Positions 17,965-46,875 of a DNA stretch of 64,000 nucleotides are shown one piece after another (positions within the stretch are counted from its first letter, which is position 1; each line of letters starts with the position of its first letter). A program made the position numbers and the translations under genes. The notes under the pieces are model-generated. The model saw only the letters and a list, made by a program, of their open reading frames with translations. It was not told the origin of the DNA and did no database searches. The DNA is taken from the sequence record PQ898602.1; one strand, given 5' to 3'.

Positions 17965-18135
17965 ATGGAACTTCCTATCGACGACAAAGAACTCGCCACA
18001 ATCGTAAGTGCTCTGCGCCTGGGTGGTGATGCAGCTCTCTATCAGAAACTTAATCTGATGAAAGAGATCCGCGAACAATATCCTGGTAGTGCGTACAAGA
18101 AAATTGCTCGTGAACAATTTGGATTTGTTATCTAA
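17965..18135 (+). CDS. 56-aa hypothetical protein
   Basis: MELPIDDKELATIVSALRLGGD...; TAATG coupling to next gene. Confidence 0.65.
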   Translation: MELPIDDKELATIVSALRLGGDAALYQKLNLMKEIREQYPGSAYKKIAREQFGFVI

Positions 18136-18596
18136 TGTTTTTCAAAAAAATTAGTTTAGTTACGGGTGGGTTTGATCCCATCCATAGTGGACATGTATCC
18201 TATTTCAAGAGAGCTAAAGACTTCTCTGATTATCTTGTTGTAGGTCTGAACACTAATGAATGGTTGACCGCCAAGAAAGGTCAATACTTCTTATCCTGGG
18301 TTGAACGTGCAGAGATTGTACGTCACCTTAACATGGTTGATGCAGTGATCACTGTCCCAGATGACGAAGTTGGTTCTGCATGTGGTGCAATCGCAAAGTG
18401 TTTAGAGATCGCAGAGACTGTTGTATTTTGCAATGGTGGTGATCGTGGATCTGGTAATACTCCAGAACTCGATATGTATGGAGATAATCCCCGAGTCCAG
18501 TTTGAATTTGGAGTTGGTGGAGAAGATAAAATGAATAGTAGTTCTTGGATTCTACGAGGGTATTTTGAACGCCAACGTAAACTTCTAGGTATCTGA
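18135..18596 (+). CDS. Cytidylyltransferase (TagD/RfaE-II-like)
   Basis: TGGFDPIHSGH, VVGLN, NGGDR, NSSS. Confidence 0.85.
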   Translation: MFFKKISLVTGGFDPIHSGHVSYFKRAKDFSDYLVVGLNTNEWLTAKKGQYFLSWVERAEIVRHLNMVDAVITVPDDEVGSACGAIAKCLEIAETVVFCNGGDRGSGNTPELDMYGDNPRVQFEFGVGGEDKMNSSSWILRGYFERQRKLLGI

Positions 18597-24383: not shown

Positions 24384-24615
24384 CCTTAAGATCCCTTTTG
24401 CTATCGTATCTTTCCTGTTGGTTCAGGGTGCGGGTGCTGTCTGGTGGTCCTCACAAATAGATGGACGAGTCAGAACTCTCGAAGCAGAGAGTCTGAATAT
24501 CGCTAGAGAGAATCGCAGATATATTGAACAGGTTATTCAACCTTCCTATGGAATCAGTAGTTCTTGGAAAAATCAATACCACGATGAGTGGGTTTTGAAA
24601 GGAGGTTGGAAATAA
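24376..24615 (+). CDS. Small membrane-anchored hypothetical protein
   Basis: aggag RBS; N-terminal TM then short coiled coil. Confidence 0.7.
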   Translation: MNDLKIPFAIVSFLLVQGAGAVWWSSQIDGRVRTLEAESLNIARENRRYIEQVIQPSYGISSSWKNQYHDEWVLKGGWK

Positions 24616-24640
24616 ATAGCCCCCGTAAGGGGGTTTTTTT
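24613..24640 (+). promoter_or_regulatory. Late promoter immediately followed by GC hairpin and T-tract
   Basis: TAAATA gccccc-gtaa-ggggg ttttttt c ATG. Confidence 0.65.
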
Positions 24641-24641
24641 C

Positions 24642-25799: not shown

Positions 25800-25843
25800 T
25801 ATAATAAATAACTAAAGGTTAAGGATCCCTGACTGAATAGGTA

Positions 25844-27136
25844 ATGAAAAGTTTCAGCAAGTTCTTCTCGGAAGCCAGAGAAACCAATGCGTCTGCAGAA
25901 GCCAAGAAACTTGGTTTAAAAGGTGATGGTCACGGAGGATGGTATAATAAACAGGGAGAGTTTGTCGCCAAAACAGAAGGCGGTGAACTCGTATTTTATG
26001 GAAAAGATAACAAACCAGGTGAGAAGGATGAACCTCATTCCTCTACACCTACTGGTCAAGCACAGGCTGCTGGAACAGAAGTAGGTGAGAGACCACAAGT
26101 AAATCCACAAGCATCCAGAGAAACTCCTGCACAGACAAGAGCGAAAGGAAATAAAGTAGTTGTCAATCCTGACGAAGAGGAAGAAGTAGTTGATGCACCA
26201 GAAGGTGAAGAGACTGAACTTGCACCTGGTGTTGTTGTAGTCTTCGGTAGATTCAATCCACCTACAATCGGTCACAAGAAACTTCTTGATAAGGCTGCTG
26301 CAGTTGCAAGAAAGAAAGGATTTGAACTGAGAATTTATCCTTCTCGTTCTCAGGATGCGAAGAAGAATCCTCTGACACCTGATATGAAGATCTCATACAT
26401 GCGTCAGATGTTCCCTGATTACATCGACAATATTATTGACGACAAGGGATCGAAGACTATCTTCAATGTACTAACTGGTGCAAACGAAGAGGGTCATACA
26501 AACATGACCATTATGGTTGGTGGTGACAGACTTAGTGAGTTCCAAGGTCTTGCACATAAGTACAACGGAGACCTTTATCAGTATGATGATCTTCAGGTAA
26601 TCTCTGCAGGTGATAGAGATCCTGATTCTGATGATGTTTCTGGAATGTCTGCATCGAAACTGCGTCTTGCTGCAGCAGAAGGAGATTTCAAAAAGTTTGC
26701 GAAGGGTGTACCCGACACTCTGAAGAACATGGAGAAGATGGAACTCTACAATGTTATTCGTAGATCGATGAACATTAGTGAAGAGACTGAAGTATGGGAA
26801 GTTGCACCTAAACTTGATGAAGAGGGAATGCGTGATGCATATCTAGTTGATGGTGTTTTTGCAGTTGGTGATATGGTAGAGAACGTTAATACTGGTCTGG
26901 TTGGTGAAGTAACTCGTAGAGGAACGAACTACATCATTGCAGTAACTGAAGCGGGTATGATGTTCAAGTCTTGGTTGAGAGATATCACAGAATTTAAGTA
27001 CTATGAAGTCGGTACTGATGCACAGAGAATTCATGCACAATCGATTACACCAGGTCAAGAAGTAAAAAGTTATACTGGTGTAAAGGTTCCTTCGATTTAC
27101 GACAGATTTAAGGCGGCTCTGAAAAAGAATAAATAA
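25844..27136 (+). CDS. HIGH-family nucleotidyltransferase (cytidylyltransferase/NMNAT-like) with capsid-targeting-like N-terminus
   Basis: MKSFSKFFSE leader; FGRFNPPTIGH, KNPL, VGGDR, SGMSASKLR; TAAATA at 25805. Confidence 0.75.
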   Translation: MKSFSKFFSEARETNASAEAKKLGLKGDGHGGWYNKQGEFVAKTEGGELVFYGKDNKPGEKDEPHSSTPTGQAQAAGTEVGERPQVNPQASRETPAQTRAKGNKVVVNPDEEEEVVDAPEGEETELAPGVVVVFGRFNPPTIGHKKLLDKAAAVARKKGFELRIYPSRSQDAKKNPLTPDMKISYMRQMFPDYIDNIIDDKGSKTIFNVLTGANEEGHTNMTIMVGGDRLSEFQGLAHKYNGDLYQYDDLQVISAGDRDPDSDDVSGMSASKLRLAAAEGDFKKFAKGVPDTLKNMEKMELYNVIRRSMNISEETEVWEVAPKLDEEGMRDAYLVDGVFAVGDMVENVNTGLVGEVTRRGTNYIIAVTEAGMMFKSWLRDITEFKYYEVGTDAQRIHAQSITPGQEVKSYTGVKVPSIYDRFKAALKKNK

Positions 27137-27164: not shown

Positions 27165-29612
27165 ATGTCTAGTTGGGAAAAATTCTCGAGCGAAATTGTA
27201 GAGGGTAAGAAAAAGCCTGCGTTAGATCCTGTTGGAAAAGAGGATGCTGACATTAATAATGATGGCAAAGAGGATGAGACCGATTCGTATCTAAGAAATC
27301 GCAGAAAGATTAGATCCAGAATCATTAGGAAAGAAGACTATGAAAACATCGAAGAAAAAGCCGTCTCAAAAGCCCAACAAAGATTCTTCGGGATGGTTAG
27401 AGCGGCTCAAAAGGGGGAAATGGAAGACCCCTCGCCTGAGGTTTCCAAAGCTGCAGCCTCCATGTCCAAGTCCGACGTAAAGGACTTTGCGAAGACAAAA
27501 CACGATAAACTACCAGAGAAGAAAGAAACAAAGGAGGAAACTTCTCTGGTAGGTGATATTGTAGAAAATCTTAGAGCACAGAGACTTGCAAGACAGGCTC
27601 AGAGACAAATTGCCCAAGATAAACAGGCTAGAAGAAAAACTGCCCGTCAAGGTCAAGACATGATTAATGATTTGGTTAGAGGACCAAATCCATCTAGAGG
27701 TAAATCTAAGAGAGTTGAAGTAAAGGCACCTGCAAATGTAAAAGGTGGTGCTAAGAAATCTTCTGACGAACCAGATCTGGATACTGTATCAGGAAGAGCA
27801 GAAGAACGTCGTAGAGCCTCTAAAACATCTGCAGAACTGCGTAGACAGGAAGACAGAACTAAAAGATCTGGATTAGCTGCTCAACTCCGAGGAGAAAGAA
27901 CAAGAAAGAAAGAAGCAGAGACCGCTGCTGCAGAACGTCGTGCGGGTCGTGATGCTGCCGCTAGAGAGAATGAAGTAAAGAGAGCTAAAGAACTTAAGAG
28001 TGCTAAAATTGATGCTAAGTCTAAACAGGACTCTGCATTTATGGATACACTGAAGAAGGAGGTCGGTGATGGTCTTGATAGAGCTGGTTCTAGAGCTGCT
28101 GTCAAGAAAGATGATACTGGTGGACAGGCACTTAGGAATCTCGAAGTTGGTGGTGATTTAATTGGTGGTCTCGCAAAGGGTCTTGTTGGTGGTGCTATGG
28201 CCAAACGTAAGGCCAAAAAAGACAGATTGGATGATCTCAAGAAACGACGTGAGGTTGATAAGGCAGGTCGTGCTGCGGGCAAACGTTTTGATATGGGTAA
28301 AAAAGCTGAAGCGGATGCGAAAGCAGACATGGAAAAGGATAAGGATGATAACCTTAAAAAATTCCTAAACCAAAAACCACCCAAATCAGTCACTGATCCT
28401 TATAAGGATGGTAAAGGTCGTTCGGATGTTGTCAAAGCTGGTGGTATTGGTGCTCAAGGTTCTGTAAGATCCAAAGGTGGATCTATGGGTGCTGATGGCC
28501 CTAAGGGTACTGCAATTCCTGGAACTACACCTAAACCAGCATTAGCTCCATCTAAACCAAATACACCTCCTGTAAGTGGTGGCGCGAGAAACCTTCTTTC
28601 TCCTGCTCAAGCTATGTCCAAACCAAAGAAAAAATTCTCTTCTAGAGGAGAAGCACTCAGAAAGAATCCGAGTATGAGAGCTAAAGTAGCAAGAGAGTTG
28701 GGTATGGGTAGTGCTAAGAAAGAAAAACCAAAAGGTTTTAAAGAAGGATTCTCTAATTGGAGAGTTGAGCTCAACGAGGGTTTCTTCTTACAAGAGGTTG
28801 AGGATGTTGAGAACAATGGTCTCCACTCCAACATTAAAAAACTTGTTGACATCTCTAAGAAGAAAAACAAGATTGAGATCAATCCTGCACTAGGTGAAGG
28901 TGCGCTTCCTGTAAAACCCATCGTTGGTAGTTTTGCACAAGGTGAAGCGGGAAAAGGTGATTCCAACAGAACCATGGGTGATGTTGCGAAACGTAGAATC
29001 AGAAGAAAACTAGTTGACTGGGCATCCCAGAAAGCTGGTGAGAAAGCTGAGGATATCGTTAAGAACATCCTTGATAAAAAGAAGGAAGGTGAAGAAGTTA
29101 AAGAGGGGTGGTCGGACAAGTATAAAAAGTCTATTGATTGCGATAACCCCAAAGGGTTTAGTCAGAAAGCACATTGTGCAGGTAAGAAGAAAGAAGTCAA
29201 GGAAGCATTTAAAGATGGTGAGATGAAACCCCAACTCAAAAAGAAGAAGGGTAACATCCAAGTAGTTGATACTGGTAACACTTTAAAGAAGTCTGTTGAC
29301 AATCAGATCAATACCGATCCTGACCTAACCTTAATCAAGAAAAAGTTGAAAGAAGATTGGCAAAAAGTCAATCGCAAGGACAAGACAGATGGTCTGAGTC
29401 AGAAAGCAGTTGATGCGTATCGTAAAGAGAACCCAGGTTCAAAGTTACAAACTGCAGTAACTGAAAAGAAACCAACTGGTAAGAGAGCAGATCGTCGAAA
29501 GTCCTTCTGCCGTCGCATGAAGGGGATGAAAGCAAAACTGACATCCAAGAAAACTTCAAGAGATCCTGATTCCAGAATCAACAAAGCTCTTCGTCGTTGG
29601 AATTGCAACTGA
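27165..29612 (+). CDS. Large modular basic late protein; putative internal-head polyprotein
   Basis: TAAATA at 27130; modules bounded by [ILV]-x-E; includes Cys-containing C-terminal modules. Confidence 0.75.
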   Translation: MSSWEKFSSEIVEGKKKPALDPVGKEDADINNDGKEDETDSYLRNRRKIRSRIIRKEDYENIEEKAVSKAQQRFFGMVRAAQKGEMEDPSPEVSKAAASMSKSDVKDFAKTKHDKLPEKKETKEETSLVGDIVENLRAQRLARQAQRQIAQDKQARRKTARQGQDMINDLVRGPNPSRGKSKRVEVKAPANVKGGAKKSSDEPDLDTVSGRAEERRRASKTSAELRRQEDRTKRSGLAAQLRGERTRKKEAETAAAERRAGRDAAARENEVKRAKELKSAKIDAKSKQDSAFMDTLKKEVGDGLDRAGSRAAVKKDDTGGQALRNLEVGGDLIGGLAKGLVGGAMAKRKAKKDRLDDLKKRREVDKAGRAAGKRFDMGKKAEADAKADMEKDKDDNLKKFLNQKPPKSVTDPYKDGKGRSDVVKAGGIGAQGSVRSKGGSMGADGPKGTAIPGTTPKPALAPSKPNTPPVSGGARNLLSPAQAMSKPKKKFSSRGEALRKNPSMRAKVARELGMGSAKKEKPKGFKEGFSNWRVELNEGFFLQEVEDVENNGLHSNIKKLVDISKKKNKIEINPALGEGALPVKPIVGSFAQGEAGKGDSNRTMGDVAKRRIRRKLVDWASQKAGEKAEDIVKNILDKKKEGEEVKEGWSDKYKKSIDCDNPKGFSQKAHCAGKKKEVKEAFKDGEMKPQLKKKKGNIQVVDTGNTLKKSVDNQINTDPDLTLIKKKLKEDWQKVNRKDKTDGLSQKAVDAYRKENPGSKLQTAVTEKKPTGKRADRRKSFCRRMKGMKAKLTSKKTSRDPDSRINKALRRWNCN

Positions 29613-36082: not shown

Positions 36083-38388
36083 GTAACGGGACCAAAGTTG
36101 TTAAAAGGAACGGAAATACTGAGAGCCTGAACCTAGACAAGATTCATAAGATGGTTGAAAGTGCCACTGAAGGTCTTGCTGGTGTGTCTGCATCTCAAGT
36201 TGAAATGCAATCTGGCATTCAGTTTTATGATGGTATTACCACTGGAGAGATTCAAGAGATTCTTGTACGCTCTGCATCCGATCTGGTAGACCTCGATAAC
36301 CCCAATTATCAATTCGTAGCTGCAAGACTTCTCTTGTTTGGTTTATACAAACAGGTTTTCGGTATCGAGTGGAAGAATGGATTCCCTCATATCCTAGAAC
36401 ACCTGAAGTCTGGTGCGACCAAAGGAATCTATGATTCTAAACTTTCGTCTCTCTACTCCCAAGAGGAGTGGGATAAGATCAATAGTTGGATCTATCATGA
36501 TCGTGACATGTTGTTCACATATGCAGGTCTACGTCAGGTTACTGACAAGTATCTGGTACAGGACAGAAGTAGTGGGGAACTCTATGAGACTCCTCAATAC
36601 ATGTATATGTTAATCTCTGCAACAATTTTCGCAGGGTATGATGTAAATACTAGAATGGATTACGTTCGTAGGTATTACAATGCAATCTCCAAACACAAAA
36701 TCAACATTCCCACACCTATCATGGCGGGAGTGCGAACTCCACTTCGACAATTTGCTAGCTGTGTTCTTGTTGATGTTGATGACTCCCTCGATTCTATCTT
36801 TAGCTCTGATATGGCTATTGGCAGATACGTTGCACAAAGGGCGGGAATCGGTATCAACGCAGGTAGAATCCGCGGCATCAACGCTAAAATCAGAGGCGGA
36901 GAGGTTCAACACACAGGTGTGGTCCCCTTCCTCAAAAAGTTTGAGTCAACTGTCCGATGCTGCACACAAAACGGGATCCGAGGTGGGTCAGCGACTGTCC
37001 ACTTTCCTATCTGGCATCAAGAAATCGAAGACATCATCGTTCTGAAGAACAACAAAGGAACTGAAGACAATCGTGTCCGTAAACTCGATTATTCGATTCA
37101 AATCTCTAGGATTTTCTATGAACGATTCATTCAAGACGGAGACATCAGTCTCTTCAGTCCGCACGACGTTCCTGGTCTGTATGATGCTTTTGGTACTCCT
37201 GGATTTGACGACTTGTATGTGGGTGCTGAACGAGATGAGTCTATTCCAAGAAAAGTTGTCAAAGCTCAAGAACTTATTCTGGATCTTCTAAAAGAACGTG
37301 CAGAGACTGGTCGTCTTTATATCATGAACATCGACCACTGCAATGAACACTCCTCTTTCATTGACAAGGTTAATATGTCTAACCTCTGTCAGGAAATTAC
37401 TCTTCCAACTGATCCTATTCAACACATCGACGATTCGTCGGGTGAGATTGCTCTGTGCATTCTCTCTGCAATCAATGTCGGTAAACTTCGTGACCTAAAT
37501 GATCTGGAAGATCTTTGTGATCTCGCTGTTCGTGGTCTTGAAGAACTGATTGACTATCAGGACTATCCTGTAGTTGCTGCAGAACTTGCAACCAAAGCAC
37601 GTCGTTCTTTGGGTGTGGGTTTCATTGGTCTTGCACACTTCCTTGCAAAACAGGGACTCAAGTATGATGATCAAGAGGCTTGGGTAAAGGTACATGAGTT
37701 GACCGAAGCCTTCCAATACTATCTTCTTAAGTCATCGAATGCCGTTGCTGCGGAGAAAGGTCCATGCACAGACTTCAACAGAACAAAATACTTCCAAGGT
37801 ATTCTTCCTATCGATACCTACAAGAGAGATGTGGACGAAATTGCAAACCCTGGACTGAATTATGATTGGGAAGGTCTTAGAGTATCTATCGCCAAACACG
37901 GACTTAGGCACTCAACATTGTCTGCTCAGATGCCATCAGAGAGCAGTTCCGTTGTGTCAAACGCAACAAATGGAATCGAACCACCTAGAGGGTATTTGTC
38001 CATTAAAAAGAGCAAGAAAGGACCACTTAAACAGATTGTCCCTGGTTACCAACATCTCAAGAATAATTACACTCTCCTCTGGGATATGCCTGACAATACT
38101 GGTTACATCAATGTTGTTGCCGTCATGCAGAAGTTCTTCGATCAAGCCATCAGTGGAAACTGGTCCTACAACCCTGAGAACTATCCAGACAACGAAGTTC
38201 CGACATCTGTAATGGCACAAGACTTCCTCCGAACTTACAAATATGGTTGGAAGACTTCTTATTATCAAAATACCTACGACAATAAGACAGATGAAATCAA
38301 GGAGGATACGAGTAACGAACAACTGAAAGTCCTAGAACAAATGTTAATGGAATCGCAAGAAGAAGATTGCGAAAGCTGCAAAATCTAG
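36079..38388 (+). CDS. nrdA: Class Ia ribonucleotide reductase alpha subunit
   Basis: ATP cone VVKRNG; PTPIMAG; SNLCQEI; MPSESSS; CESCKI. Confidence 0.97.
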   Translation: MSNGTKVVKRNGNTESLNLDKIHKMVESATEGLAGVSASQVEMQSGIQFYDGITTGEIQEILVRSASDLVDLDNPNYQFVAARLLLFGLYKQVFGIEWKNGFPHILEHLKSGATKGIYDSKLSSLYSQEEWDKINSWIYHDRDMLFTYAGLRQVTDKYLVQDRSSGELYETPQYMYMLISATIFAGYDVNTRMDYVRRYYNAISKHKINIPTPIMAGVRTPLRQFASCVLVDVDDSLDSIFSSDMAIGRYVAQRAGIGINAGRIRGINAKIRGGEVQHTGVVPFLKKFESTVRCCTQNGIRGGSATVHFPIWHQEIEDIIVLKNNKGTEDNRVRKLDYSIQISRIFYERFIQDGDISLFSPHDVPGLYDAFGTPGFDDLYVGAERDESIPRKVVKAQELILDLLKERAETGRLYIMNIDHCNEHSSFIDKVNMSNLCQEITLPTDPIQHIDDSSGEIALCILSAINVGKLRDLNDLEDLCDLAVRGLEELIDYQDYPVVAAELATKARRSLGVGFIGLAHFLAKQGLKYDDQEAWVKVHELTEAFQYYLLKSSNAVAAEKGPCTDFNRTKYFQGILPIDTYKRDVDEIANPGLNYDWEGLRVSIAKHGLRHSTLSAQMPSESSSVVSNATNGIEPPRGYLSIKKSKKGPLKQIVPGYQHLKNNYTLLWDMPDNTGYINVVAVMQKFFDQAISGNWSYNPENYPDNEVPTSVMAQDFLRTYKYGWKTSYYQNTYDNKTDEIKEDTSNEQLKVLEQMLMESQEEDCESCKI

Positions 38389-45262: not shown

Positions 45263-45926
45263 GTTTAGGAATACTATGTCTATGTTGCGGTACCGAGTTT
45301 ACATTTTGTACCACGACATCCGCACATACTGCCGCATATGGGCTACGAGGGTGGAAACGTATGCCCTGCTTTAACAATTCGCCACAATTTTTCAATCTCG
45401 CGATCTCAAAGTCAAGGCGTTTGTTTGCATGTTGTTGACGCATCAATGCAATGTTTGCTGCTGCAGCCTCTTTACATTGATCTTGTAATTTTTTATCTAA
45501 TGGTCTAGACCAAGTAGCACTAAAACCAAGGGATAGATTATAGTTATCTTTCTGACCTGTTCTGACTGGACGATAAAATTGCACCGAACCAGGATTATCT
45601 AAAATACCATCTCCAGTTGGATTCCCTTCAGCATCTGTTGTTCCAAAGTTATCACTCATATCATATACAGGATCCATATAGTAATCCTCATATGGTTTCA
45701 TTGCCGATACTGCACCAGTCACATATGGCGTAATGTTGAGAGTTGGCCCCTGACACTGGATCCCTCCGCCATAGGTATTCGTGATGTATGGACCCTGAAG
45801 AACCTGGATAGCTTGGTTGGTCACCGAGCCAGAACTATTAGCAACAGGAGCAGCAGTAGCGGATACACCGCCAATAGTTTCAGACAAAACCTGAGCAGGG
45901 GATAAGATTGACGCCGCACTTAAAAT
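45057..45926 (-). CDS. Exported hypothetical protein; start codon unresolved (ATT at 45926 or upstream in overlap)
   Basis: ETIGGVSATA.PVANSSGSVTNQAIQVLQG, CQGP, RLKNCG; ORF track extends to 46091. Confidence 0.65.
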   Translation of the reverse strand: MLSAASILSPAQVLSETIGGVSATAAPVANSSGSVTNQAIQVLQGPYITNTYGGGIQCQGPTLNITPYVTGAVSAMKPYEDYYMDPVYDMSDNFGTTDAEGNPTGDGILDNPGSVQFYRPVRTGQKDNYNLSLGFSATWSRPLDKKLQDQCKEAAAANIALMRQQHANKRLDFEIARLKNCGELLKQGIRFHPRSPYAAVCADVVVQNVNSVPQHRHSIPKPTSSVLGTQNEESSQHHSSDAAQLGEPLQTRLGASYPVRQQPSSVPSSSQVSPLLTKDQQEVLRAVPR

Positions 45927-46372
45927 TACTGCTGGAAGATACTTGTAGTATCGGTTACGCTTGTAACTGTCGTTTCTCTTTGAATAATTGTATGGTTGCT
46001 CAGTCCAGGCCCTGAGTAAGTTTCTGTGAACTGAAATGCTGCGCCTGGTGTTGTCTGTTTGAAATTGGGCGTGCTCGTCGCTCCTGTCCATGTCGAATTC
46101 ACTCCATTAATAGTTACATTAGATTGTCCAGTTGTAGGACTAATAGTTCCTCCAATTGGTTCCACACCACTACCTGATACTGAATATTGATATCCAGTAT
46201 TATAATCCATTGAATTAATAGTCTCGGTCACTTTGGATGTAGTTTCAGTGTGGCTCGTCATTGAGCCTTGTGTGAAATTCGGGACCACTGGCACTGAGTA
46301 CGCAGGTTGAAGTAGTCCGTGAATAACACCAAGAACCAATCCCAGACCGATTGCTTCTTGCAATCTAGTCAT
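45926..46372 (-). CDS. Exported Thr/Ser-rich hypothetical protein
   Basis: Signal peptide then VPVVPNFTQGSMTSHTET. Confidence 0.7.
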   Translation of the reverse strand: MTRLQEAIGLGLVLGVIHGLLQPAYSVPVVPNFTQGSMTSHTETTSKVTETINSMDYNTGYQYSVSGSGVEPIGGTISPTTGQSNVTINGVNSTWTGATSTPNFKQTTPGAAFQFTETYSGPGLSNHTIIQRETTVTSVTDTTSIFQQ

Positions 46373-46875
46373 CAGTCGATAATTGTGAGTTCAGTTACAA
46401 ATTGAGCTGTTACACTAGTACCAGCACCTTGACTTGTTCCTGTGATGGTGAGTGTGTGTTTGTTATCGATTGTACCAACAGAACCACCACTACTATAGTC
46501 ACCTGCACTACCTGCGGTATATGCAGTTGAGTTAGTTCCAGTTCCATTACTTGCATCACCTGCAGTAAAAGAATTGCTGAAACTAAAAGCATTACCAGAA
46601 GTTGATTGGGTCGCGGTTGGAATTGATCCTCCTGCTGCACCATTAGTTAGAGTTCCAAGACCACCAACATTTAAGTCTGCAGTGCCTGTTCCACCAACGT
46701 CAGTGACAACTCCACTACCAGACACGGAGTAAGAGTTACCAATTCTAGAAGTGGTTGTTCTTGCTGCGTCTACTGTGTGCTGAAGACTTGACTGGTGTCT
46801 TGTAACTAATCCGCCTGCATTGGCTGCACCTGCGGTCACAAATAACATACTAAATGCTAAGAGAGCTCTCTTCAT
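46372..46875 (-). CDS. Exported Gly/Thr/Ser-rich hypothetical protein
   Basis: MKRALLAFSMLFVTAGAANA signal peptide; minus TAAATA at 46902-46907. Confidence 0.7.
   Translation of the reverse strand: MKRALLAFSMLFVTAGAANAGGLVTRHQSSLQHTVDAARTTTSRIGNSYSVSGSGVVTDVGGTGTADLNVGGLGTLTNGAAGGSIPTATQSTSGNAFSFSNSFTAGDASNGTGTNSTAYTAGSAGDYSSGGSVGTIDNKHTLTITGTSQGAGTSVTAQFVTELTIID

Follow-up and report, generated by a model that had tools for sequence, protein, structure and literature searches.

In bacteriophage T4, the internal proteins IPII and IPIII (and also IPI and Alt) carry at their N-terminus the capsid targeting sequence, a leader that reads M-K-x-[YF]-x-x-F-[ILF]-x-E with Ala after it. According to a review of the T4 system, the ten leader residues suffice for packaging, with positions 4 and 7 serving targeting and positions 8 and 10 serving processing; with Asp at position 10, processing is blocked and targeting is retained. 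Translated from the T4 genes, both IPII and IPIII begin MKTYQEFIAE/A (the slash marks the cleavage site), and IPI begins MKTFKEF. Here, we compare with this system open reading frame 175 (ORF175) of Synechococcus phage S-SCSM2R (PQ898602.1, 244,186 bp), a T4-like cyanomyovirus. The gene lies in the window that we analyzed, a stretch of 64,000 nucleotides corresponding to bases 124001-188000 of the record, and positions below are those of the window unless stated otherwise. We propose that ORF175 encodes a late-expressed precursor of an internal head protein that carries an active adenylyltransferase, a proposal that we consider probable as a whole.

Enzymes of this kind have been found with cyanophage particles before. 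Proteins described as “virion-associated NMNAT/cytidylyltransferase” were detected in virions of S-SCSM1, S-CBWM1, S-SZBM1, and S-CREM2 purified on cesium chloride (CsCl). S-SCSM1 ORF91 is a direct homologue of ORF175, and the enzymes of the other three phages are known by their published NMNAT/cytidylyltransferase descriptions. The papers on these phages left true packaging undecided and offered no mechanism. The paper describing S-SCSM2R proposed ORF175 and an NAD synthase (ORF242) as counter-defense genes for the synthesis of nicotinamide adenine dinucleotide, NAD(+). The annotation of the gene as an NMNAT, the counter-defense discussion, and the virion association of the transferase family are thus already published. 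In the literature that we searched, we found no link between the transferase leader, or the protease sites, and the T4 targeting signal.

Our proposal starts from three features at the head of the gene:

Positions 25803 to 25810, + strand: late-promoter box AATAAATA, of the NATAAATA type, 33 nt before the start codon, from a motif census.
Positions 25844 to 27136 including the stop codon, + strand: the ORF175 precursor, 430 aa, an ATG-initiated frame annotated “NMNAT protein.”
Positions 25844 to 25873, + strand: leader MKSFSKFFSE, resembling the capsid targeting sequence; by likeness to T4, the prohead protease is predicted to cut behind E10 (FSE/A).

The reading frame and its motifs had been described earlier from the letters of the window (hereafter, the original prediction). 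On re-reading, we found the frame and every quoted string in place: MKSFSKFFSE at residues 1-10, GRFNPPTIGH at 135-144 (nt 26246-26275), SGMSASKLR at 266-274 (nt 26639-26665), NISEE at 310-314, and DITE at 380-383, as well as an acidic stretch at about residues 109-123.

Compared with the IPII and IPIII leader, MKSFSKFFSE/A shares M1, K2, F7, E10, and A11 and has conservative replacements at positions 3, 4, and 8. As in T4, position 4 is aromatic, position 7 is Phe, position 8 is hydrophobic, and the Glu at position 10 precedes a small residue. The leader was kept across all 28 sequences of our alignment A1, in which the relatives are 41-77% identical and the adjoining linker is free to vary. 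In 57 IMG/VR loci and A1, it takes the form MK[KNRS]F[ST]xF[LF][TI]E/A. One clade (S-CAM9 and S-PRM1) has a GTG-initiated variant, M-SFFKKVRTILE/[AG], and leaders of this kind also occur on Syn9 gp184 (MKKFSAFLSE/A) and in Stenotrophomonas phage DLP_6 (MKNIKDILE/A).

To gauge specificity, we scanned genomes with the strict pattern M-K-x-[FY]-x-x-F-x-x-E-[AG] back-translated into DNA, using the reversed pattern as a control. The strict pattern matched twice in T4 (ipII and ipIII), once in S-SCSM2R (ORF175), once in Syn9 (gp184), and three times in a complete 249-kb relative, there on the transferase and on two other proteins, one of 54 aa and one, strongly basic, of 185 aa. The reversed strict pattern gave no matches. 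Dropping the last residue of the pattern gave 13 forward matches vs. 3 for the control, and every match inspected was the start of an open reading frame. This relaxed pattern added T4 gp61.1 and small proteins in S-CAM9, S-PRM1, and the 249-kb relative. Because the strict and relaxed matches fall on unrelated proteins, the leader is common to unrelated proteins, as in the T4 internal-protein locus; the likeness between T4 and the cyanophages therefore extends to sets of proteins that have the same leader but are unrelated to one another.

The small leader-bearing proteins of the relatives are candidate cyanophage internal proteins, judging by their N-termini. In the 249-kb genome (IMGVR_UViG_3300035703_000005; loci L085, L087, and L088), the leader stands on a 54-aa basic, a 185-aa very basic, and a 104-aa protein; in S-CAM9, it stands on proteins of 102 and 96 aa (L090 and L092), and in S-PRM1, on a 208-aa Gly/Arg-rich protein (L091). 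Several of the genes found with the relaxed pattern, among them those of three small leader-bearing proteins of relatives, directly follow a homologue of ORF176, the gene downstream of ORF175. The sole extra T4 match, gp61.1, is a 54-aa hypothetical protein adjoining the primase (NC_000866.4 18966-19130; L093 667-831, - strand) whose start, MKTFKEFIKE, is close to the T4 capsid targeting sequence. In S-SCSM2R itself, codon 20 of ORF47 (DUF6171, record positions 37757-38035) is an internal Met, behind which stands the leader-like NNFKDFLKE/V, and the annotated start of the gene may be too far upstream.

We also considered whether the leader and the 45-aa module that follows it form a tag that can move between cargo proteins. 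In a region search with residues 1-58, the hits examined were members of the transferase family with one exception, and tblastn with the same unit returned orthologues only, so that just the ten-residue leader is common to other proteins. The exception, P0152, is a 708-aa protein on a 2.4-kb contig that joins the leader and N-terminal module to a gingipain-like Peptidase_C25 domain; it may be a real new cargo or an assembly chimera.

The late-promoter box also resembles the T4 arrangement, in which a late promoter stands at the cargo genes. The NATAAATA motif is the published late promoter of cyanomyoviruses, and the original prediction had placed such a promoter at 25805; we found AATAAATA at that site with a spacing like that of head genes. 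In a motif census over the 244-kb genome, rebuilt from its annotated stretches, ATAAATA was rare, with 44 copies on the + strand. It stood 35-42 nt upstream of the genes for the portal, the prohead protease (gp21), the scaffold (gp22), and gp13, and upstream of ORF174 by 30 nt, of ORF175 by 40 nt, and of ORF176 by 36 nt. It was absent at the surrounding replication genes that we checked (polymerase, UvsX, helicase, MazG, primase, and NrdA). The exact T4 box, TATAAATA, is not the relevant form here: its two matches in the window are at chance level and neither lies at ORF175. The motif and its spacing suggest that ORF175 is expressed late. Contigs from seawater RNA libraries hold near-identical pieces of ORF175 and carry no start, strand, level, or timing.

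The machinery that would read such a leader is encoded in the same genome. Like T4, S-SCSM2R has genes for a gp21-type prohead protease and a gp22-type scaffold, which lie beside the portal and capsid genes, and its capsid protein reads FLGE/A where T4 gp23 is cut. Virion data come from relatives. S-SCSM1 ORF91, which is 45% identical to ORF175 over 426 residues and begins with the leader MKSFLQFLKE/A, was found by mass spectrometry in the proteome of the virion, and in the S-SCSM1 GenBank record, the five successive genes ORF89-93 carry a virion-protein flag. S-SZBM1_140, an NMNAT/cytidylyltransferase-type enzyme, was detected in virions with its neighbor _139, as was S-CREM2 ORF154, and the latter paper notes the “frequent detection” of such transferases in cyanophage virions. 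Together with the T4 match, the conservation of the leader, and the specificity of the pattern, the detection of leader-bearing orthologues upholds the earlier suggestion that ORF175 is addressed to the capsid. We regard this as likely and well supported, if indirect and unproven.

Under our proposal, a gp55-type late sigma factor would transcribe ORF175 from the AATAAATA box, as its motif and spacing suggest. The ten-residue leader would then dock the precursor on the scaffolding core of the prohead in the manner of the T4 targeting sequence, which it matches at the residues critical in T4. The gp21-type protease would remove the leader after E10 and may also cut within residues 313-335 and after E383. 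Given the T4-like leader, the enzyme probably enters the head together with the DNA and reaches the host by injection; the mass spectrometry of orthologues likewise points to an enzyme that stays in the head with the DNA until infection. An enzyme injected with the DNA would act before any phage gene expression. Its chemistry would be the transfer of AMP from ATP to a phosphorylated small molecule, with nicotinamide mononucleotide (NMN) or nicotinic acid mononucleotide (NaMN) the likeliest acceptor.

Unlike the T4 cargoes, ORF175 is a nucleotidyltransferase of the HIGH superfamily and has Phe at P3 of the predicted cut. Behind its leader, unlike those of the T4 internal proteins, come a conserved module of 45 residues and a disordered linker of considerable length, and its packaging and cleavage are predicted. 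An AlphaFold2 model built on 28 relatives, read alongside conservation in A1, left the leader (residues 1-12) disordered and divided the rest of the protein as follows:

Positions 25880 to 26008, + strand: conserved N-terminal module, residues 13-55, one helix and a three-stranded sheet (predicted local distance difference test score, pLDDT, ~80).
Positions 26009 to 26218, + strand: disordered Q/P/E-rich linker of variable length with an acidic end, residues 56-125 (pLDDT 26-34).
Positions 26219 to 26779, + strand: catalytic HIGH-superfamily nucleotidyltransferase domain, Rossmann-like, residues 126-312 (PF01467; pLDDT ~85).
Positions 26780 to 26848, + strand: disordered interdomain segment with ISE/, ETE/, and VWE/ sites, residues 313-335 (pLDDT <50 for 316-335).
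Positions 26849 to 26992, + strand: SH3/KOW/Tudor-like small five-stranded beta-barrel, residues 336-383, ending DITE/F (alignments A1 and A2 and a domain model).
Positions 26993 to 27133, + strand: variable basic C-terminal tail, residues 384-430 (low model confidence).

The most serious alternative accepts packaging and injection and gives the enzyme another acceptor: 4'-phosphopantetheine, some other phosphorylated metabolite or nucleotide signal, or the end of a macromolecule. Both of the characteristic motifs, TxGH (26264-26275) and SGMSASKLR (26639-26665), lie inside the catalytic domain. The domain matched the Pfam family CTP_transf_like (PF01467) over residues 133-233 with 26.2 bits against a cut-off of 21, and ORF175 matched PHROG 395 “cytidyltransferase” with E = 8e-94. 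TxGH and SxxxxR were invariant in the aligned relatives, and jumbo-phage members carry the canonical HxGH and SSTxxR. Within NCBIfam, the only matches were sub-threshold ones on the first motif, to NadR-type and NadD-type NMNATs and FAD synthetase. The NMNAT/NadD models themselves (TIGR00482, TIGR01526, and PRK08887) were not passed, at 13-17 bits against cut-offs of 112-341, which speaks against NMN or NaMN as the acceptor.

Structure comparison gave a similar picture. In Foldseek searches of the Protein Data Bank (PDB), N(a)MNAT/NadD enzymes ranked together with phosphopantetheine adenylyltransferase (PPAT) at E values of 1e-5 to 1e-6 and 12-19% identity, and the template modeling (TM) scores to the target were 0.67-0.72 for PPAT vs. 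0.50-0.62 for NadD. In the exhaustive VIA-align comparison, NaMNAT, PPAT, NadM, and the NMNATs of archaea and eukaryotes aligned over 154-172 residues with Z scores of 12.3-13.4. The best N(a)MNAT reached 13.4 and PPAT 13.2 over 154 residues, a tie that also counts against a firm substrate assignment. Built from twelve diverse catalytic domains, a profile searched against the PDB reached Staphylococcus aureus NadD first, though at no better than E = 0.006, followed by NadR (0.3), PPAT (0.42), and Methanocaldococcus jannaschii NMNAT (0.7), and it aligned the GxDR...EF stretch with the GxD segment of NadD and not with PPAT. A profile built from the full-length alignment had given one marginal match, and searches of the ESM Atlas and of viral fold libraries yielded nothing but viral “cytitidyltransferase” clusters, with no functional lead.

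Taken by resemblance, then, ORF175 shares with NadD and the NMNATs the fold, an (H/T)xGH motif, an SxxxxR motif comparable to ISSTxxR, and the GxD segment, and N(a)MNAT, NadM, or NadR make up most of the top fold matches. It differs from them in its low identity and in the leader, N-terminal module, barrel, and tail that are joined to the enzyme; we also see no counterpart of the Trp on which NMNATs stack the pyridine ring. To CoaD/PPAT, it is alike in the Z score, the TM score to the target of ~0.7, and a first motif that is also TxGH, and unlike in the weaker profile match. Because NadD-type enzymes are the nearest relatives in sequence and fold, we consider NMN or NaMN the single most likely acceptor, at somewhat short of an even chance. 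Another acceptor is a substantial if lesser possibility: PPAT ties N(a)MNAT in both fold searches, the ORF175 family is a virus-only clade without a close cellular relative, and an SH3/KOW-like barrel is fused to the enzyme. The original prediction of a HIGH-type nucleotidyltransferase stands at the level of the superfamily, to which alone the protein is assigned, and its predicted fold is that of the adenylyltransferase branch. The comparison that had been suggested with NMNAT, PPAT, and TagD-class enzymes left the first two tied with glycerol-3-phosphate cytidylyltransferase below them.

The genomic context bears on the acceptor as well. NARP1, NARP2, and the KVP40-type NadV/NatV pathway are the nearest described phage systems if NAD(+) is the product, as it possibly is. 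Unlike them, ORF175 has no Nampt/NAPRTase partner: PF04095 was absent from S-SCSM2R, S-SCSM1, Syn9, S-CAM9, and the 249-kb relative, and the control genomes were positive. This agrees with and extends the earlier remark that no Nampt partner is visible in the window, and it is a further point against NMN or NaMN as substrate. A partner of the NARP kind was sought in the five genomes as PF04095, and ADP-ribose pyrophosphate (ADPR-PP) synthetase was not searched for. NadE was present in only two of the five cyanomyovirus genomes, and the transferase occurs throughout cyanomyoviruses. The transferase is also not fused to Nudix or kinase domains, unlike jumbo-phage NMNATs, and it appears from its leader to be virion-addressed instead of early-expressed, unlike the NARP pathways. 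The products of NADases, ADP-ribose and nicotinamide, are not substrates of NMNAT. The absence of Nampt in all five genomes, the patchy NadE against a transferase found throughout cyanomyoviruses, and NADase products that NMNAT cannot use together weaken the reading of ORF175 as an answer to NAD-depleting defenses. The suggestion that it rebuilds NAD as counter-defense was therefore not supported as stated, given also the failed NMNAT models and the equal structural match of PPAT.

A second alternative, which we consider unlikely, is that ORF175 is an unpackaged cytoplasmic late enzyme, an NMNAT-like auxiliary metabolic gene whose leader resembles the T4 signal by the chance of an amphipathic helix and whose relatives reached virion preparations as carry-over. 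Several observations weigh in this direction and against our proposal. The authors of the virion studies allow for the carry-over of abundant late proteins through CsCl purification. The published S-SCSM2R virion proteome does not name ORF175, an omission that weighs weakly because only 23 proteins were detected. Thus, a check by virion mass spectrometry, as had been called for, was positive for the S-SCSM1 orthologue and the S-SZBM1 and S-CREM2 enzymes and, weakly, negative for ORF175 itself. Leaderless versions exist: RaK2 and GAP32 have bare 180-aa enzymes, and the P-HM2 version (BFVD) is a stand-alone protein of 183 aa, too short for the N-terminal parts. The enzyme can thus be of use to a phage without being packaged. 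The ten-residue match is also short, and at P3 of the predicted cut, where the T4 rule has Leu or Ile, ORF175 has Phe (FSE) and its relatives L or F. For every member of the family, both leader-driven packaging and leader cleavage are inferred from sequence.

Still, a chance helix fits poorly with a leader pattern that is as rare here as in T4 and falls on gene starts only, that is conserved where the flanking sequence varies, and that recurs on unrelated small basic proteins. Nor does carry-over sit easily with the detection of five consecutive S-SCSM1 cluster genes in virions, or an ordinary late enzyme with a late box at head-gene spacing amid replication genes without one. We therefore prefer the reading of ORF175 as a packaged head protein.

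That the enzyme is instead a sugar-phosphate or glycerol-phosphate cytidylyltransferase feeding cell-wall or glycan synthesis seems very unlikely to us. The Pfam name CTP_transf_like and the annotation “cytitidyltransferase” on hundreds of records suggest such a role, and S-SCSM2R carries many glycosyltransferases. Yet, cytidylyltransferases reached VIA-align Z scores of only 9.7-10.9 over 110-138 residues (10.9 for glycerol-3-phosphate cytidylyltransferase), below the scores of the adenylyltransferases, and no cytidylyltransferase model of NCBIfam matched at E ≤ 0.1. Because the fold scores favor adenylyltransferases, the old “cytitidyltransferase” label is probably wrong. S-SCSM2R also has a second gene of the HIGH family, ORF163 (18135-18596), which is annotated as a glycerol-3-phosphate cytidylyltransferase, directly follows the DNA polymerase gene, and is unrelated to ORF175. 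In the genome scan, this TagD-like gene outscored ORF175 on PF01467 (41.9 vs. 28.7 bits), and ORF175 lies far from the sugar clusters. Least probable of all is a mainly structural or scaffolding head component with a vestigial enzyme fold, which could draw on metagenomic relatives with TKEH or ANSH for TIGH and on the position of the gene in a cluster of modular head-cargo-like proteins, but which is hard to square with G143, H144, S269-x4-R274, and ~60 more catalytic positions being invariant in ORF175 and its 27 aligned relatives or with the existence of leaderless free enzymes of the same family.

The broader reading, in which marine T4-like cyanophages load an active NAD-pathway adenylyltransferase and small basic proteins through a working T4-type targeting system, is tentative, and we would not call it likely. 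If true, infections of Synechococcus and Prochlorococcus would each start with an injected dose of a metabolic enzyme, before transcription. Among the cargoes of capsid targeting sequences, the enzyme would be the first that is metabolic, as opposed to ADP-ribosylating or nuclease-inhibiting, and the leader would be an existing address tag with which foreign proteins could be loaded into the heads of cyanophages. The reach of the T4 internal-protein system would extend to phages whose infections kill a large fraction of the primary producers in the sea. The transferase family is among the most widespread “unknown-role” genes of ocean cyanomyoviruses, and several groups saw the transferase in virions and could not say whether it belongs there; a T4-type label provides a concrete, testable mechanism of entry. 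An injected enzyme would alter the nucleotide-cofactor chemistry of the host from the first seconds, which bears on NAD-depleting defenses and on the classification of auxiliary metabolic genes. The finding is tempered by the prior publication of the gene and of the virion association, the uncertain substrate, and the proteome of S-SCSM2R, in which ORF175 is unlisted.

Outside the leader, protease sites are a weaker guide to the protein. The original prediction had divided ORF175 into modules delimited by [IV]xE. The quoted strings are present, and a few sites are well placed or conserved, but there is no enrichment: per 100 aa, ORF175 has 1.9 [LIV]xE sites and the portal protein 1.8, so the modules cannot be argued from enrichment. 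Sites in the disordered stretch at 313-319 are retained in 21-23 of the 28 relatives, and the interdomain segment 313-335 is, speculatively, an internal protease target. At the E383 column, [LIV]xE, in the form [IL]-x-E, is present in 28/28 aligned sequences, with E383 invariant and L381 nearly invariant (A1 and A2); this conservation may be structural instead of cleavage-related. The leader site is the only one at which we hold cleavage of ORF175 to be likely, based on its motif.

Among the other parts, the N-terminal module had no match in Pfam, and its residues A16, A20, G24, L25, G31, G38, G47, and L49 are invariant in A1. The linker differs among the A1 relatives in both length and sequence. 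Modeled alone, the C-terminal part matched KOW, Tudor, and SH3-like barrels with VIA-align Z scores of 6.5-7.0, a likeness that indicates a common fold only. The C-terminal tail is shortened, extended, or swapped for other small modules in relatives. PHROG 4808, a profile of 91 positions under a ribonucleotide reductase name, matched residues 323-386, which include the SH3-like barrel (3e-13). S-PM2 p141 (L066 4815-5090), a 91-aa protein annotated “NrdB / ribonucleotide reductase A subunit,” would be the counterpart of the barrel if it belongs to PHROG 4808; the reductase name on both is probably an annotation error.

The family as a whole is large, with more than 7,800 clusters at 90% identity in a protein search and a relative in 563 phage records. 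In HTVC008M, a 596-aa protein has the catalytic domain at its N-terminus and DUF5824 at its end. Fusions with the downstream modular protein reach 1,167 aa in an IMG/VR locus (L024, 3701-7201) and 1,021 aa in S-RIM2 (BFVD). This varied architecture fits a cargo cluster with shuffled modules. The metagenomic relatives P0148, P0153, P0156, and P0160, in which TIGH is replaced by TKEH or ANSH, have GISSGM or GNNSAK for GMSASK; they keep the leader and barrel and, to judge by these motifs, may be inactive or re-specified. In both RaK2 (L070 2477-3528) and GAP32 (L069 2443-3546), the bare transferase directly follows a DNA adenine methyltransferase (Dam) gene.

Downstream of ORF175, the same late gene cluster continues with two further features:

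Positions 27129 to 27135, + strand: ATAAATA box of ORF176, running over the stop codon of ORF175 and the two sense codons before it, from the motif census.
Positions 27165 to 29612, + strand: ORF176, a basic protein of 815 aa made up of modules, which starts with a second targeting-like leader, MSSWEKFSSEIVE/G.

Homologues of ORF176 start with MASWEEFSRIVAE/A. In the protein, DUF3008 and DUF6321 modules occur together with an acidic, DxDxDG-like loop close to the N-terminus, and in S-SCSM1 its modules are split over ORF92 and ORF93, both of which are flagged as virion proteins.

Upstream, the sequence directly behind the ATAAATA of ORF174 reads as a G+C-rich hairpin with a stretch of T after it (GCCCCC-GTAA-GGGGG-TTTTTTT; 24612-24641) and looks like the terminator of the preceding gene, which makes a late promoter of its own for ORF174 uncertain. 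In Syn9 (gp183, L065 1297-2259) and S-PM2 (p138, L066 1282-1860), a DUF6267 gene lies directly upstream of the transferase. ORF174 is not related to it, and the DUF6267 gene of S-SCSM2R lies elsewhere (ORF67, record positions 45654-46634). A K-Y-D-G stretch in the DUF6267 protein resembles the KxDG motif of nucleotidyl-transferring ligases.

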